The notes below the pieces were generated by a model that was not told where the DNA came from, ran no database searches, and saw nothing but the letters and a program-made list of their open reading frames with translations. Positions 1 through 59,357 of a stretch of DNA of 64,000 nucleotides are shown piece by piece. The DNA is from Guillardia theta CCMP2712 (lineage: Eukaryota > Protista > Cryptophyta): assembly GCF_000315625.1 (NCBI RefSeq), contig NW_005434658.1, forward strand, positions 339,139 to 403,138, given 5' to 3'. A program made the translations under genes and the position numbers. Position 1 is the stretch's first letter. Each line of letters opens with the position of its first letter.

Positions 1-112
1 ACAATTGAGTAAATTAGACAATCGAGCCACAAACTCATTCAGACATGTAGGCAGGCGGGCGGGCGAGAAGGCAGACGCAGCCAAGGGCGGTAGTTCATTC
101 AATAACTGACCG

Positions 113-51242: not shown

Positions 51243-53884
51243 TTACCTGCAGGTGGTCAGAGAAGGCCTTGGCAACGAAGGAGCTGCTCTCCATCTCGTT
51301 GAGACACCTTGCCATCTGGAGGTAGAAGGCCGAGGTCAGGGTCCTCATGGCCTCCACCTCGTCCGGCCATTTCCCGCTCTCCTGCAGCTGCAGTACACAG
51401 TCGATGCTCTCAGCGTTCAGCCGAAGTCGCGCCTCCTCCTGCCGCTTGCGCTTCTTGCTCCCTTCCTCCGGCCCCACCTTGAACGCCAGTGGGTGGACGG
51501 AGACGTCGAGGGCTCCGAGGCCTCTGACCCTGGTGGAGAGAGGCTGGAGGGAGAGGACGGGGAGAGGAAGCTTGGAGGGACTGATGGACATCATGGTCTT
51601 GGCAAGCTTGTCCATGACGTTGAAGGAGGAGGAGGAGGCTACTTCCTCCTCCCTCCAGCGCCCAAAGCTCCCTTCCCCTTGCTGCTTCAAGATCTCCTCC
51701 GAAGAGCCGGCGATGCCAAGGACGCGGGAGGATCGGAGCTCTGGGATGTGTCGCTTCAGCGCGTAGGCGGCGATGGCGGAGGGTATGGCGTTCCTCCCGC
51801 CGGCTCGCTCAGCCTCGTCCCACGACAGGGTCTCCTGGATGGATCCGTCCTTGAACCTGCCAAGCACATCAGTGAAAACATTCCCGCAGCATCCTTCTCC
51901 TCCATCTTGTTCTCTCTCCTTCCGTACTCACTCACTGGGCCTCCTCCCCCTCCCCCTCTCTCTCCCTGTCTACCTCTCACCTTCGAAGTTCGGACTTGTT
52001 ACCCCAGAACTTCCGAAACTCTTTCGCAGCATTCGCATCGTCAGCCGAGGGCCCTCGGTCGATCTTTCTCGTGCTGGTCTCCTCATTGAGTAGCATGCCC
52101 ACAAAGATCCTCCTCCTCCCGCTCGCTGCCCACCCGCTCCTCCCCCCTGCCTCCTCCAACGTCTCGAAGCTGTCCTGCAGGACGCTGTTGCCTCCCCGTT
52201 TCCCGGCGATCTTCTCTGAGAGAAACATGTTCGCCTCCTCTGTTCGATCTGGAAGGACTCGAGCAAAGTGCATGCGGTCCCCTAGGGCCTTGTCGAGCAC
52301 AGAGAGCACTGCCTTCTCCACAGCCTGCGCGTTTGACATCCCCGGCTCTTTGTTGAACCCGATCGCCTCCTTCCACTCTCCTCCACCCAGCCTCTCCCCG
52401 CTCGCATCCTCCTCCACCTCCTCCAGCTCTATCACCAGGATCTCGTCGTACTTGCAGAGAAGAGAGACGCGGGTCAGCATCAGCGGGCTGAAGCCATCGC
52501 GGAGGTCGTGTTCGAGGCAGAGGAGGGCAGCACGGGCCTCGTGCGTGAGCTCAGAGACGGCGGAGTGAGAGAGGCGGCTCAGCACGTTGACAGCAAGCGA
52601 CTGGTCCAGCAGGACCGCTGGGTACCTGCCCCTGAACTCCTCCATCGCCTCCTCCACTGAAATCTTGGCCTCCTCGGTCGGGGTCAGGTGAACTCCACTC
52701 TCGAGGTTCTCCCGCTTGGAGAGGAAGACGAAGGCGGCTCGAAGCATGTGGTAGCTGCTCATCCCCCGCGAGATGGTTCGGTTCTGAACGAGGTACACCA
52801 GCAGCATCGAGAGCATGAACCCGTTGAGCCCGTCCCACGCGCTGTCCAAGCACCGCTGCCGCACCCATACCTTGAGCAGGAGGGCCGCGTCAACCAGCGC
52901 CTGGCACCTCGAGAACTCAGCATGCAGCACATGGAGATGAGGAAGGAGCCGCAGCTGCTCTGCCATCAGCGCGTTGTAGTGCGGCGTCGGGGGCTCTAGG
53001 GCGATGTCTCCGTCCTGGCTGCGAAAGTTGTTGCGGGTCGGGCGGAAGCGCTGAAGGGGGAAGAAGTCAGCGGGAGGGCAGACGAAGAGCTTGACAAGGA
53101 ACTTGGCGCTCAGCCCTGCAAGGGCCCGGGGCTTGAGGACGAGGACCAGCTGACCCCTGTGGTAGCCCGACCGTGAAAAGCTCACAGACTCGACCAGGTT
53201 GTTCCCCGACGAGCCTAGGGCCTTGGCGATGTGGGAGAGGTACATGTTGCGCTTGTACATGAACCTTCCGTTGAGGAAGTCTTTGGCGTGAAGGCAGTCG
53301 GCCGGCATCTCCACCGCCATGTCGACATTCAGGTCGGGCTTGACCAGCGTCCTCAGCAGGAACGACCCGACCAGCTCCACCTGAGTAGGGGGAAGGAACT
53401 GGAACTGCTGTCCCTTGACGGTGTAGAGAGCATCAAGACCCTTGTCCTTGATTGTGGACCGCGGGATCTTCTCGAGGAAGCTCTTGAAGGAGTGCAGCCA
53501 GTCCTCAAGCGGCCCCAGCTTCGTGTAGTCTACCTCGACCTCCGACTGCAGCTCGTTCATCTCCAGTCGAAGGAGGGAGGATTTGTAGAGGAGCTCTGTC
53601 TCTTTCAAACCCTTCATCTCATCGTGCGTTGGATCATCCCATAGCTTATCCCTGGACTTGCTCTCCTCGACCTTGTCGTCCTCCAACTCCTCCCCACCAT
53701 CCGAAGACGAGTCTTCCTCCCCCGCTTCCTGATCGACAGTCACTCTGTTCTCTTCCTCTTCCATGTCATCGTCGTCAATCAAGGACAACCCTGGATTCTT
53801 TGCTGGCTCTACGGCTGTTGCTGATGAAGATCCTCCTCCTCCTCCTCCTCCTCCTCCTTCCGTTTTTCTCTTCTTGCCTGCCAT
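49202..53884 (-). CDS. NOL6: Nucleolar protein 6 / U3 snoRNP Utp22 (Nrap family), multi-exon
   Basis: LVGSFLLRT, VDMAVEMP, KDFLNGRFMYKRNMYL, PTPHYN, LLKVWVRQR, DRGPSAD, FRKFWGNKSELRR/FKDGSIQE, ESGKWPD, LCKRWVAS, GFIRFLWLISTFDW. Confidence 0.95.
50431..50493. repeat. 8-bp tandem repeat (GAGAGCAG)n in a NOL6 intron
   Basis: About eight perfect copies. Confidence 0.9.
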
Positions 53885-54116
53885 GGTTGGCCGCACGTGA
53901 AATTCGCCGAACTACGACCACCCCCTTGAATAACCATTTCGATTTGAGAATATCTGGGGTGGGTACTTATTTTACTCAATTTAATTGTATACGAGATTCA
54001 AGTCTGCCTCAGGAATTATATAGGAAAATCAGAACGATCGTTCGTTGTTGTTTTCTAATATCATAACTATTAACTGTGACCTGGGCTTTTCTGCCCTGCA
54101 CCTCGTCCAAGGAACT

Positions 54117-54773: not shown

Positions 54774-57700
54774 TCATGTCGACTGGGCAGTGGGCGGATC
54801 CTGCTCGTACGACTTCCTCGTGCACTGTACCTTCCTGACCTGCAACGATGCGTCAACCAGCCTCTGGGCAGCGGGAAGGCACATTACCGCTCCTGTCGTC
54901 GGGCTGCGAAGATCCAGCGTGAGGTGGGAGCCCTCAGGGCCAACTGCGGAAGTTTCAGCATGAGGATGAGGGAGCACGGCGGTTGAAGGACCGATCAAGT
55001 TCGAGATCTGCACCGGTTCCATGCCAGGATGCAGGGAGATGTCGTTGACTGCAGGCACGAGAACAGGTCACTCTCAATGGGAGGCAAAGGTATCCTGGCA
55101 CCTTTCAGTATGATGTCGCCCGGGAATATGAGGCCTGTAACGACAATGATTCAGCCACGGGAGCAGCCTGCCGGGTAGGCCAGACCGGATCGTTCGGCGA
55201 AGCCATTCTCCTTCAGTCTCCTGACTATCCAGTACCTGTAGGTAGTAAGGATGTGAGGGGAGCTAGCTCCGAATCATTCACCTTCCAGTTGGGTCTCGCT
55301 GTACTGTGAAACCCAGTCCAACCGTCTTCCTCGTCCTGTCCTCCTCGCTATCCTTCAAAGCCCCAAACTTGCTGTCCATTGCTGGCTTTGAAGCATCAAT
55401 GGAGCCCTCCATTCTGCCATCTGTGCCATGTTTCTTGACCACGAGTGGGATGGGCCTTGTTCGAGCTTCTTGCAGCAGCTTGCGAACATGCTGTCATGCT
55501 CATTACTCAACCACACACGAACAGATTGAAAACACTGACATCTGCAGAGTGCACCGATACCTCCTCTCCTTGTACCTCCAGGAGCTCGTCTCCGACAGCA
55601 ATCTAACGGCAACACATTCAGTTATTGCTAGCTGAGGTCGAATTGTGCGCAAAGAAGCATCATAACGTCTCACCAGGTCAACTGGTGCAGCCACAACATC
55701 CTGGTTGATGGACTCGACTCGGAGCGGGTGCATGTCGGATATGCCGAGGACGATCTTTTGAGGCTCATCAGCAGCTATTACCTGCAAGCTTTGTCTGACT
55801 TTCTGAACATCTTCAATGCTGAGATCATAGTCTATCAGGGTGTAATGCTTGATGATTTGCATGTCTGTCCTGTCTGTTGCGATCAGTGCCTTGATGGATT
55901 CGATGACCTCCTTTCCAATTGTTTTTGACTTCTTTCCCTCTGAGCTCGAGAGGCACGAGTCATTCGTTGAGCCTCTTGACTGTTCGTTGTTGCCATGCGT
56001 GCCAGTGAACAGCTGGCTGAGGGCTCCGAAGACGTCCCCACCTCCTTTGGAAGTTTGCGGGTTCTGGAAGAGAGTTGCGGTTAGTTGGAGAGCATCGTCC
56101 AATATGTTCTTGCTCTGAGAGATTTGGGTACTCAAGGTATCTTCCTTCAACGTTTCCTTCCCTGATTCATTCGGCCTTGTTTCATTGGCTTCTAAAGGAG
56201 AATCCTCCGATTCCACGTCGGTACCAATCTCCGAGCCCTCGGTGTCAACAACACTTTGAGCCTGCTCTTTCGAGGACTTGGATGCCGTATCAGTGTGGAG
56301 ACTGTCGGCTCTGGATGCCCTTGCCCGCATCGCGTCAAGTTCGCTCTCGAGGGTCTCGATCTTCATCTGAAAATCCTGCAGCTGTGCTACAGCTGCCTCG
56401 TGCCTTCGCAGTTCACTCCGCAGCAGCTCTTCGTCTACTCGATGGGTGTGGATCTTCTTCTCGAGATCGCTCACCTTTGCTCTCAAGGCATCAACCTCAA
56501 GGTGCGCCTTGGCTTCGGATTCATTCGCTGCCTTCAGCCTGTTCTCAAGATCCATCATAGAGCTCTGCATCCCCGATTTCACATTCTCAATCATCTCCTT
56601 CGATGCAACCTCCCATTCCGACTGATCGCGTGAAAACTGATTGATCTTTTCCGTGAGCCGTTTGTTGTCCGCCTTGGCAACCAACAGGGCCTCTTTCAGC
56701 TCGTCAAAGAATGTCTCGGACTCCGACATGATCGTTGAGAGCTGCCCAGGTATGCTCGCCGCAGTCCGCTTGAACGACAAGTCGGTCTGAAATCCTCGGC
56801 TATGCAGGAACTTGGGAATCACTGCGCGCCCTTGTGATTCCTTTACTTCTGTACACGTCTCCTCAGCAACCGTCTCAAGGTGCAAGTCTTGATTTCCCCT
56901 CAGCATCTCTTGCTGGCCGTCGAGCACCGCAGGATCCATCGCATCCATACGGTCACTTGGCGATGAGAACAAAGAGAGGGTGTGCCGATTGACCTCCTCC
57001 TTGAGCGCTTCCGCGCACTCCTCGTCTTGATCGATCTGTAAATCTGTCAAACTTTGACTCGTGAGCAAGATCTGCGCAAGCTCCTCTGCACTTTGTTTCT
57101 GCAGTGAGCAACCCCGCAGGTCTAAGGAGGTGATTGTCTTGTTGACCCTGAGAGCAGCGCAGAGGATTGCAATCCCATCAATCCCTAACTTCTCGTTATA
57201 GGCTAGCGAAAGCATTTCCAACTTCGGACTGCAGGCAAACATGGCGATCAGCTTCTTCAAAGAACTGTCCTCCAGATTGCAAGCTTCAAGGCTCAATGAC
57301 ACCAAATTCTGCAGATCCTGCACTACCAGCCCAAGTTCTGCAAGGTCCAGGACATTGTAGAGCACGCAGCCGCTAAGGTGAATCTCTTTCAAGTTAGGGT
57401 TCATCTGTATGTTTTGGAGTATAGTGTGCAGCTTCAGTTGTCCTCGCAAGGAGGGAGCGCACTGCGGGCTCGTGGCAATGTCTAGGATCTCAAGATGCCC
57501 TTCAGCACGGGCACAGATCGAGTTCAACACGTCATTGTCTAGACAACATTCATCGCCGCATCGTACAACCCTCCAGAGCTTGTTGTCATGTCCTACCCTC
57601 TTCCATGTCTTGTTCACCATGCTCATACGTGAGATGAACGCTGATCCAAAGTTGGCGTGGAGGAACTGAAAGAGGACAAGGAGCACCTGTGCGACTTCCT

Positions 57701-59357
57701 CTTGAGTCAGGTACGAGATGCTCCAAGTTCTGTTTAGCGTTTCAATCCTCTTCTTCGACTTTGCTGGGCTCACGTCGCCTTTCAGCTCATCCTCTTCTAT
57801 CAAGACCCAATCTGTCATCGAGGCAAGCTTCTGTCCTTTTCGACCTCTACCACTAGGAATGATATCAGGGTCGTTCCAACCGGGCCCCCGGTAGAGATCT
57901 GGATCATCATACCCTGAGTTTCTGGCATCGACGTCCTTGGAACCAGTTCTTTTGGGCCCTGACAGCGCCTGAGCTTTTGATCCGAGCACCATCGATGCCA
58001 CCTGGGTCAGCAGAGATTTCGCTGAGAACCTCCGAGATAGCTGCTCACGCTTTTGTGAGTCTCGCAGTCTGGATTGCGGGAGGTCACTCAGCATCCTCAC
58101 GAGAGTGACATCAATCATCGAGTCTCCCCTCGACAGCCCCAGTCGCACGGAGGTCCCGGGCTTGCCAAGGATCAGCCCCTTGAAGTCGTCAATCACACGT
58201 CCAACAGGCTTCCCTTCAACTGTCCGAAGAATGTCTCCCGCCATGATGCGCCCGTCCTTGAAAGCCGGCCCGTGCGGTAGGACCTGGGTGACGACGATTC
58301 CCTCCCCTGGTCGATTTGCAAGAGCAAGACCGACACCCACAAGTCCCTTCGTCGCCATGGGCGAGCTGGTCGAGTTAGTGTTTGCCACCTGCTTACCAAC
58401 CACCGTCCCCTTCCCCGTTGTCGAGGATCGAGTTTTTCCTCCTGCGCCGATCCTCGGAAGTCTGTAGAAAGCGCAGATGCTATTGCACTTGTGCGCTCCA
58501 AGGAAACGCTTGATTCCGTCCATCCCCAAATTTCCTTTTCCGTAGCCCTTCCTATCACAGGTGTGAATTTGTGGATCAGTCCATAGGTCCCCTACACCCT
58601 GCAGATCGCACACCAACAGCCTGTTCCCACTCGCCTCCCAGGTGAAGTGGCTGAATGCCTGAGGCGTGTTCCTTTCGTCATCGCTCCAGTCCCAGTTGTT
58701 GTTCCACTTCCTGTAGGTTCCAGAGATGAACTTCTCAACACCGCAGAAAGGGCGTCCGGGTCGGTCCACCAGTTCCAGCACGTAGGCCGCTATGAAGTCA
58801 ACTGACTTGGGGGGGCTCTTCTCGTTGAACCTTTGAGCCCACATCCTCGCCTCCATCTGCATCTGAACGTCCTCAAAGAACTGCTGAGACGACTCACCCG
58901 CGTCCTTAGAGAACTTGACGACACACATGCCAGCGACGCCAGGAGTCGCCAAATCCCACATTCGATGCGCAGTACGCATCGCCCCCTCTGCGAACGGCTG
59001 CTGTTCGATCCTGCAAAGGAACGCGGTCCTCGTCCACTTTCCTGCTCTGGGATCGAACTCATGCCTAATCGCCTTTTCCACCCCACTCAGGTCAAACGCG
59101 TCATGATCGGCATACTGCGGCATGTATCTCTCCCCGACATCGGCCTTGTCGGCCTTCTTTGCAGCAGCGTTGCCTTCAGCCGCCTGCCCGTTCTTCTCAT
59201 CTCTGTCCTCGTTCCCAACGATTAGGATCGCAAGCAACGGAGTCTTTCGCTCCTCGTACTGCTGCTGGGTGATCTGGCCGTTGTCCAGGAGCTTCTTCAG
59301 TTTCCGCAGCTCCTCAGCAGCCTTCTCTTCCTCGGATCGCAGCTTTTGGCCACGCAT
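54774..59357 (-). CDS. Alpha-kinase (eEF2K/MHCK-type) multidomain protein: SHOCT-kinase-PDZ-F-box-LRR-coiled coil-PDZ-PDZ
   Basis: FAEGAMR, VVKF, VEKFISGTYRKWNNN, PQAFSHFTW, CDLQGV, TDPQIH, GKGNLG, HKCNSIC; first exon 59357-55674, then micro-exons to the stop at 54774. Confidence 0.93.

Follow-up and report, generated by a model that had tools for sequence, protein, structure and literature searches.

Could a single polypeptide both phosphorylate a protein and hand it to a ubiquitin ligase? Most substrates of SCF ubiquitin ligases need prior phosphorylation by a separate kinase. The question is raised by a nuclear locus of the cryptophyte Guillardia theta CCMP2712, where an alpha-kinase and a putative F-box with leucine-rich repeats (LRRs) lie in the same open frame. 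We analyzed a stretch of 64,000 nucleotides around it (the window), and we find that the locus is one real cryptophyte gene, encoding about 1408 amino acids. The ORF list of the window has it as a single minus-strand ORF (59357..55503, 1284 amino acids). Exon 1 is one open frame of 3.7 kb that encodes a SHOCT-like helix, the alpha-kinase, PDZ1, an F-box-like segment, the LRRs, and a stretch that resembles a coiled coil; downstream of it, seven small 3' exons carry PDZ2 and PDZ3 (Table 1). The preliminary description of this DNA had listed these same parts, and the architecture is real and conserved in cryptophytes.

Table 1. Features of the alpha-kinase gene, by position in the window
Feature	Amino acids	Position	Strand	Remarks
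Whole coding region		54774..59357	-	8 exons, 1408 codons; frame-consistent model, total length divisible by 3
SHOCT-like helix	15-42	59232..59315	-	PF09851, 28.2 bits (cut-off 27)
Alpha-kinase catalytic domain	123-295	58473..58991	-	PF02816, 187.5 bits (cut-off 21.3)
PDZ1	336-418	58104..58352	-	PDZ_6 29.6, PDZ_2 29.9, PDZ 26.6 bits, all above cut-offs
Acidic motif pair GYDDPD ... GW-x-DPD	~481-499	57861..57917	-	linker between PDZ1 and F-box
Divergent F-box	552-597	57567..57704	-	long H1, 4-residue loop insertion, H2 and H3 ending in LW
Linker and RI/NLRC3-type LRRs	598-797	56967..57566	-	repeats of 28-29 residues; ribonuclease inhibitor, E 1.9e-20
Coiled-coil-like region	~870-1015	56313..56750	-	HAP1_N 22.2 bits, Pox_A_type_inc
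Conserved helical motif	~43 in length	55773..55901	-	just before PDZ2; 44% identity to L006 ORF, E 9e-5 (tblastn)
PDZ2 (interrupted by introns 1 and 2)		55425..55766	-	exon 2 alignment to L006 ORF
PDZ3, across exons 3 to 7		54888..55328	-	ordered exon alignments to L006 ORF
Intron 1		55603..55673	-	71 nt, GT..AG
Intron 2		55479..55518	-	40 nt, GT..AG; sole frame-compatible GT..AG pair avoiding a stop
Intron 3		55236..55281	-	46 nt; splice model and ortholog alignment
Intron 4		55135..55185	-	51 nt; exact 17-codon gap at this site in L005 ortholog alignment
Intron 5		55049..55101	-	53 nt; splice model
Intron 6		54944..54991	-	48 nt, in frame, GT..AG, inferred; removal restores collinearity with ortholog amino acids 401-416
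Intron 7		54840..54887	-	48 nt, in frame, GT..AG; optional, weakly supported

The whole domain arrangement is conserved in a family of at least seven cryptophyte sequences. A transcript from Hanusia phi (P0001) has the same domain order, shares the start methionine and the N-terminus, and is 83% identical overall; conservation is highest in the F-box-LRR stretch, where identity rises to 93%. The database protein for the G. theta gene was not among the matches of our protein word searches. Elsewhere in the G. theta genome, we did not find the F-box-LRR module again. The paralog on C93 combines an alpha-kinase with C2 and not with an F-box.

The alpha-kinase domain looks intact. The match to PF02816 spans the full profile (1-185 of 185), in agreement with the complete kinase of the preliminary description. 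In PDB the domain matches MHCK A (E 9.6e-56) and eEF2K (E 3.9e-51), and the alignment to MHCK A preserves the motifs DxQG, TDPQIHT, GxGNLG, and HKCNxxC. Specifically, the catalytic Asp-x-Gln, the metal-binding aspartate (in TDPQIH), the C-terminal glycine-rich loop, and the histidine and cysteines of the zinc module align identically, and all of these are invariant in six family members. K148, a candidate for the ATP-binding lysine, is also invariant in the family, and its stretch lies outside the printed PDB alignment. All of the catalytic and zinc motifs that the alignment covers are thus kept. The SHOCT-like element that had been described ahead of the kinase does pass its Pfam cut-off, marginally in G. 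theta and with 29.1 bits in Hanusia P0001. SHOCT is mostly a bacterial, C-terminal motif, so its N-terminal place in a eukaryotic protein is atypical.

PDZ1 passed all three of the Pfam PDZ models that we used (PF00595, PF17820, and PF13180), in agreement with its original assignment. In the acidic linker that follows it, six members of the family agree without exception at G493, P497, and D498. Neither this linker nor the 43-residue helical motif before PDZ2 has a match in Pfam.

Five or six RI-type LRRs come directly after the F-box segment, and their similarity to ribonuclease inhibitor bears out the type that had been proposed. They also match NLRP and NLRC3 proteins, and the proteins that they resemble most are RI, NLRC3, and LRR proteins of the axoneme; LRR_6 scores 24 bits on the cut-out segment. 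An AlphaFold2 model that takes in this stretch (pLDDT 80.5) has alternating strands and helices, and with VIA-align it is closer to RI (Z 20.6) than to FBXL2 (Z 16.4). CC-type repeats of the FBXL class were not found in this segment, and no FBXL protein was among the sequence matches of the F-box-LRR segment. In a Foldseek search with a 271-residue model, SKP2 and FBXL2 came out on top, and the alignments of this larger model to FBXL2, SKP2, and FBXL5 begin at their F-boxes. Because the LRRs dominate the alignment of the whole model (as in the match to RI), it is uninformative about the F-box by itself, so we folded the F-box separately. As for the coiled coil, what remains of the claim is a set of weak matches to coiled-coil families, and it is from these that we infer it.

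Is the segment before the LRRs an F-box? By single-sequence comparison, it would not be recognized. The G. theta segment, when cut out, has 17.9 bits (E 0.0027) against PF12937, which is below the cut-off of 24.3 bits; when the entire ORF was scanned against Pfam, no F-box came up at E ≤ 1; and the segment is not listed in a genome-wide scan for F-box-like sequences at E ≤ 0.01. When we compared the F-box-LRR segment to PDB with phmmer, every match was an RI, NLRP, or axonemal LRR protein and F-box proteins were absent, so a search with a single sequence is insufficient here. The orthologs score higher: P0003 passes the cut-off (28.8 bits) and P0002 comes close (22.3 bits). With a profile of the family, 13 of the 14 matches in PDB are F-box proteins (E 7e-4 for Skp2), and hhalign aligns the family to 13 F-boxes from G. 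theta that pass the Pfam cut-off (94.4%, E 8.9e-8, 37 columns). The AlphaFold2 model of a 68-residue segment (pLDDT 81.6) has helices at 8-26, 28-34, and 39-45. Among the 45 Foldseek matches listed for this model, 41 are Skp1-bound F-box chains, with rmsd of 2.4-3 Å over about 50 columns; every E-value for this small model is above 0.1.

These results make us confident that the segment is homologous to F-boxes, which is to say that it is divergent but real. It is only at the level of the family and of the predicted fold that it is recognizable as an F-box. The claim of an F-box is thereby upheld by the family profile, by the profile-profile comparison, and by the predicted fold, but not by the G. 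theta copy taken alone.

Whether this F-box still binds Skp1 is a separate issue. The alignment to F-boxes covers only the second half of H1 along with H2 and H3. The LPxE start of H1, which in F-boxes is tied to the contact with Skp1, is conserved in no member of the family, and both HMMER and hhalign left it unaligned. Also, H1 is lengthened and there is an insertion of four residues in the loop between H1 and H2. These changes, the sub-threshold score of the window copy and its absence from the genome-wide scan, and the resemblance of the LRRs to RI, NLRC3, and axonemal LRR proteins, all of which have no F-box, would fit if the helices derived from the F-box have lost Skp1 binding and merely cap the N-terminus of the LRRs. 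The protein would then be an alpha-kinase that is scaffolded by PDZ domains, LRRs, and a coiled coil and is unconnected to ubiquitination, much as MHCK A is targeted by its coiled coil and WD40. We take this possibility seriously, but we do not consider it probable. The core of H2 and H3 (the C/N-K/R-x-W and LW positions) is kept across the family, and the fold search with the segment by itself gives almost exclusively Skp1-bound F-boxes. The helices of F-boxes interlock with those of Skp1, and on their own they are seldom stable. The fusion of the sister kinases to UBA and E2 also argues against a mere cap. The proline of LPxE is missing from about half of the F-boxes in G. theta that pass the Pfam cut-off as well, and Skp1 genes are present in the genome. 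Overall, we think that the F-box probably does bind Skp1.

If it does, the F-box would dock on the Skp1 that the genome encodes, and the protein would become the substrate receptor of an SCF-type cullin-RING ligase. The LRRs and the PDZ domains (PDZs typically bind C-terminal tails) would hold partner proteins, the built-in kinase would phosphorylate these partners or the receptor itself, and the SCF core would ubiquitinate whatever is held. A single polypeptide would thus couple the phosphorylation and the ubiquitin tagging of the same target. The coiled coil would probably dimerize the protein. We view this full scheme, in which a target is phosphorylated and then delivered to SCF, as quite possible, though somewhat short of probable. 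In its favor we counted that the kinase, PDZ1, F-box, and LRRs are in one uninterrupted ORF and that Hanusia phi has them in the same order; that the UBA and E2 fusions of the sister kinases give this kinase clade a second link to ubiquitin; and that eEF2K is a client of SCF, that Skp1 is encoded, and that many G. theta F-boxes also lack the proline. Against it we counted the sub-cut-off score of the window copy, the absence of LPxE, the loop insertion, the RI/NLRC3-type LRRs, and the Foldseek E-values. A broader idea, which is speculative and on the unlikely side, is that one clade of alpha-kinases was wired into the ubiquitin system as a cryptophyte-specific design, in which the kinase is an SCF receptor that writes a phosphodegron on targets captured by its PDZ domains and LRRs, with the E2 fusion in sister genes. 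This would be a self-contained relay from kinase to ligase, and no counterpart to it has been described for alpha-kinases.

The F-box could also bind Skp1 mainly for the sake of the kinase's own stability or location, via auto-ubiquitination, with no delivery of third parties. F-box proteins are commonly auto-ubiquitinated. Control of this type over the stability and location of a kinase was reported for MEKKα of Dictyostelium (PMC5666861). We consider this reading unlikely as the main role, as three PDZ domains and an LRR array are a large outlay on partner binding; the same data fit the delivery scheme, and the two readings are compatible.

The earlier reading saw few introns in the 3' part of the gene, but the model needs seven. 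The intron at 55603-55673, which had been predicted, has GT..AG ends, and the exon that follows can be aligned to an ortholog in its PDZ2. That ortholog is an uninterrupted ORF (L006:7497-8843) with two PDZ domains that pass Pfam's cut-offs (PDZ_6 66 bits and PDZ 59.4 bits). Exon 2 (55602-55519) is identical to it at 14 of 21 positions (amino acids 240-260, inside the PDZ_6 stretch at 224-280). The end of exon 3 and exons 4, 5, and 7 then align in order (amino acids 341-351, 354-369, 371-379, and 401-416), inside or adjoining the ORF's second PDZ stretch (338-398). Exon 6 has no significant alignment to this ORF, and exon 8 has a weak alignment only (amino acids 419-426). The least certain junction is intron 2, where the ortholog alignment gives no direct support. 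Introns 6 and 7 are both in frame and contain no stop codon. When scanned singly against Pfam, none of the exons for PDZ2 and PDZ3 has a match, so the two spliced PDZ domains of the preliminary description hold up by collinearity with an orthologous ORF but not exon by exon. With PDZ2 and PDZ3 assigned via this collinearity, the predicted protein carries three PDZ domains. That two or more adjacent genes were read as one is highly improbable: the exons for PDZ2 and PDZ3 do hang on seven predicted short introns, and the Hanusia transcript ends shortly before PDZ2, but the kinase, PDZ1, F-box, LRRs, and coiled coil share a stop-free ORF, the two halves of PDZ2 must belong to one gene because intron 1 splits them, the 43-residue motif is in the kinase exon here and in the PDZ-pair ORF in L006, which links the parts, and the 3' exons are collinear with the ortholog.

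We class this protein as a new domain architecture assembled from familiar parts, and we regard its mechanism as a proposal. We searched the literature for alpha-kinases with F-boxes, for Guillardia, and for this PDZ architecture and did not find a description of the combination. The claim that no such architecture was known holds for the literature that we could search, but not for the databases, where members of the family are already present without names. The known partner domains of alpha-kinases are WD40, SEL1, vWA, Ig, and the TRPM channel; this family would extend them to PDZ and F-box-LRR, and in relatives to E2 and UBA. If the scheme is true, then the gene is a natural fusion of a kinase and an F-box receptor, a "Rosetta stone" case of the coupling of phosphorylation and ubiquitination. 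Should the F-box fail to bind Skp1, then this is just another multidomain alpha-kinase from a protist. As a test object, the gene offers the kinase domain and the F-box-LRR, with Skp1 as the third part.

Among alpha-kinases, MHCK A from Dictyostelium and eEF2K are closely alike in the catalytic domain, with the catalytic, glycine-rich, and zinc motifs in common, and like the G. theta protein they add modules for targeting, such as a coiled coil, to the kinase. The targeting parts differ: WD40 in MHCK A, and SEL1-like repeats and calmodulin in eEF2K, while the F-box, the RI-type LRRs, and the PDZ domains are absent from both. eEF2K is degraded through SCF-βTrCP (PMC8438118), so it is a client of the ligase, whereas the G. 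theta protein is a putative receptor subunit.

In SKP2, FBXL2, FBXL5, FBXL17, and KDM2A/B, the F-box is directly followed by an LRR solenoid, as it is in the G. theta protein, and F-box/LRR proteins are the top Foldseek matches whether the search uses the 271-residue model or the F-box by itself. KDM2A/B also have an enzyme domain on the polypeptide that bears the F-box. The G. theta protein differs from the FBXL proteins in having LRRs of the RI/NLRC3 type (28-29 residues) instead of the CC type (26 residues), an F-box with a longer H1, a loop insertion, and no LPxE start, an alpha-kinase as the N-terminal partner, and three PDZ domains.

MEKKα of Dictyostelium has a conventional kinase, an F-box, and WD40 on one polypeptide (PMC5666861). 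As in the G. theta protein, a kinase and an F-box share a chain, and MEKKα is tied to ubiquitin-mediated control (PMC5666861). However, its kinase has the eukaryotic-protein-kinase fold and not the alpha-kinase fold, it has WD40 instead of LRRs, and it has no PDZ domain. As the lineages are unrelated, the two fusions are independent.

In the nearest paralogs of the kinase in related cryptophytes, an alpha-kinase is joined to UBA and to E2 (UQ_con, 127 bits); we found no locus of G. theta at which an alpha-kinase and an E2 are linked. The kinases of these PDZ-alpha-kinase-UBA-E2 proteins (P0006, P0007, P0009, and P0011) are 50-52% identical to the one from G. theta. They have the E2 catalytic domain and UBA in place of the F-box-LRR, and the PDZ ahead of the kinase, but like the G. 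theta gene they include PDZ and join the kinase to a module of the ubiquitin system.

This nuclear gene of a cryptophyte alga encodes an alpha-kinase domain, an F-box-like segment, leucine-rich repeats (LRRs), and PDZ domains in a single protein. We scanned an 87-Mb, 669-contig assembly (G000) in which the window is G000:C16:339139-403138. In a reading of open frames, the kinase part is a single frame of 1284 codons (see table). The alpha-kinase and PDZ1 both pass Pfam's cut-offs in this frame, in the order given in the preliminary description, and its SHOCT-like N-terminus also passed. There were weak matches in this ORF to LRR_6 and to coiled-coil families. SHOCT is normally a bacterial, C-terminal motif; here it lies at the extreme N-terminus of a eukaryotic gene product, and it is kept in Hanusia phi and detectable in another family member (P0004). 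The linker between PDZ1 and the F-box-like segment contains the acidic motifs GYDDPD and GW-x-DPD, which are found family-wide in an otherwise variable stretch. These did not match any known family, and may act as a short linear motif or as a site of phospho-regulation. The neighboring gene has a poly-Gly and acidic N-terminus ahead of its Nrap domains and looks ordinary.

Features of the gene and its neighbor. Positions are in the window; aa are residues of the protein; matches for the 3' exons are to the downstream ORF of L006, an orthologous metagenomic locus.
Feature	Position	Strand	Evidence or remark
Open frame	59357 to 55503	-	1284 codons
SHOCT	aa 15-42; 59232-59315	-	Pfam 28.2 bits, cut-off 27
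Alpha_kinase, full length	aa 123-295	-	Pfam 187.5 bits
PDZ1	aa 336-418	-	three PDZ models of Pfam passed
PDZ1/F-box linker motifs	57861-57917	-	GYDDPD, GW-x-DPD
43-aa helical motif	55773-55901	-	44% identity to L006 ortholog
Intron-rich 3' stretch	54840-55673	-	seven introns
Exon 1 tail			L006 ORF residues 134-175
Exon 2			L006 ORF residues 240-260
Exon 3 end			L006 ORF residues 341-351
Exon 4			L006 ORF residues 354-369
Exon 5			L006 ORF residues 371-379
Exon 7			L006 ORF residues 401-416
Exon 8 (weak)			L006 ORF residues 419-426
Neighbor gene, Nrap domains 1-3 (Nrap/UTP22-type nucleolar protein)	51977-53896	-	next downstream, same strand

The closest database relative is a transcript from Hanusia phi (P0001), with 83% identity overall and 93% identity across the F-box-LRR stretch. 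Word searches recovered the same domain order in P0001, P0002, P0003, P0004, P0005, and P0018. P0018 starts within PDZ1 and P0004 stops early, which suggests that these two are ORF fragments cut by introns. We did not find a second copy of the F-box-LRR module in the G. theta genome.

The kinase domain looks intact: catalytic DxQG, TDPQIHT, the loop sequence GxGNLG, and HKCNxxC of the zinc site are all kept in the printed alignment, and these residues are invariant across six family members. Its nearest relatives are MHCK A from Dictyostelium (E = 9.6e-56) and eEF2K (E = 3.9e-51). Alpha-kinase loci are numerous in G. theta, with 31 matches at exon level above the Pfam cut-off. The closest paralog in this genome, at C93:94645-95160 (L004:3644-5398:-), combines the alpha-kinase with a C2 domain, and other relatives bear EF-hand, WD40, ArfGAP, or Sel1 domains. 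In other cryptophytes, the paralogs closest to this kinase domain (P0006, P0007, P0009, and P0011, one of them from Hanusia phi) contain PDZ, alpha-kinase, UBA, and E2 domains (UQ_con, 127 bits), and one also has a WW domain. These proteins are a second, independent fusion of the same kinase clade to the ubiquitin system. We saw no linked alpha-kinase and E2 locus in the G. theta genome.

Judged alone, the copy in the window does not pass as an F-box by HMM. A whole-protein Pfam scan gave no F-box model at E ≤ 1, the cut-out segment scored 17.9 bits against F-box-like (PF12937; E = 0.0027, cut-off 24.3 bits), and the window copy was absent from the 19 matches listed in a six-frame, genome-wide scan with this model. 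The F-box of the preliminary description does hold up in its orthologs, in profile comparisons, and in the predicted fold. The orthologous segments all match PF12937 in the same register, with 28.8 bits (above the cut-off) for P0003, 22.3 for P0002, 17.6 for P0004, 15.4 for P0018, and 15.0 for P0001. When a profile of four family segments (A3) was compared to all PDB sequences, 13 of the 14 matches at E ≤ 10 were F-box proteins: Skp2 was the best (E = 7e-4), followed by Fbw7, FBXW8, GID2/SLY1, and FBXL3. Aligning A3 to 13 Pfam-passing F-boxes from the G. theta genome (A4) with hhalign gave a probability of 94.4% (E = 8.9e-8, 37 columns). For the 68-residue segment, the AlphaFold2 model (pLDDT 81.6) has helices at 8-26, 28-34, and 39-45, and F-box chains from Skp1 complexes account for 41 of the 45 PDB matches listed by Foldseek (rmsd 2.4-3 Å over about 50 columns; the individual E-values all exceed 0.1, which is to be expected with such a small domain). 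Together, these scores, profiles, and predicted folds indicate that the segment is very probably a diverged F-box.

As previously described, the LRRs are of the RI type, with repeats of 28-29 residues: the best match is ribonuclease inhibitor (E = 1.9e-20), followed by NLRP proteins, and the nearest relatives in the protein database outside the family are NLRC3 proteins. For a model of aa 530-800 (pLDDT 80.5), SKP2 and FBXL2 were the top Foldseek matches. The VIA alignments to FBXL2, SKP2, and FBXL5 start at those proteins' own F-boxes, and RI is the best fit to the LRR part (Z = 20.6).

PDZ2 and PDZ3 were proposed to appear only after splicing, and the proposed intron at 55673-55603 does have GT..AG ends. 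At L006, an uninterrupted 448-codon ORF directly follows the kinase ORF and contains two PDZ domains, with two stretches for each of the models PDZ_6 (66 bits) and PDZ (59.4 bits); L005, another orthologous locus, has one PDZ-bearing ORF downstream. The window's pieces fall in strict order on the L006 ORF (by tblastn and exon-by-exon local alignment), with no significant alignment for exon 6. However, the 3' exons, scanned singly, did not match Pfam, so the two domains are supported by collinearity and not by their own HMM hits. With seven GT..AG introns (40-71 nt), the modeled gene stays in frame and has 1408 codons, and the L005 alignment has a matching 17-codon gap exactly at intron 4. Two of the introns are 48 nt, in frame, and without a stop, so they were invisible to the ORF scan and to the preliminary description. 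Introns 2 (40 nt) and 7 are the least certain junctions. These very short introns all lie in the last 900 bases; the first 3.7 kb of the gene is intronless. PDZ2 is divided by intron 1, and the conserved 43-aa motif before it (which has no Pfam match) lies in the kinase exon in the window and in the PDZ ORF in L006, so the kinase part and PDZ2/PDZ3 are one gene.

We propose that the F-box would dock on Skp1 and that the protein would thereby act as a substrate-receptor subunit in an SCF ligase. Partners would be held by the LRRs and PDZ domains, the kinase may phosphorylate either these partners or the receptor, and whatever is held would be ubiquitinated by the SCF core. The G. theta genome contains Skp1 genes. 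Alternatively, the F-box might be a relic that does not bind Skp1 and merely caps the LRRs of a scaffolded kinase. The alignable part is limited to H2, H3, and the second half of H1, the H1-H2 loop has a 4-residue insertion, and the family does not conserve the LPxE start. The missing LPxE is not decisive, as about half of the genome's own Pfam-passing F-boxes lack the proline. We consider a relic possible but somewhat doubtful. It seems unlikely that the F-box serves mainly for the kinase's own turnover, as has been reported of MEKKalpha from Dictyostelium, a kinase with F-box and WD40 domains (PMC5666861). Given the collinear orthologs, an artefact of the gene model is very unlikely.

In the literature that we searched, we found no description of an alpha-kinase with an F-box, in agreement with the preliminary description, or of alpha-kinases in Guillardia. 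If the proposed SCF receptor is correct, then the protein would work like an F-box/LRR protein, but it differs in two features from the classical FBXL class, whose members combine LRRs of the CC type with an F-box that carries LPxE and is recognized at the Pfam level. In its catalytic domain this kinase is closely related to eEF2K, which is a target of SCF-betaTrCP-mediated degradation (PMC8438118). All of the parts were known before, and MEKKalpha is a precedent for a kinase and an F-box on one protein (PMC5666861).
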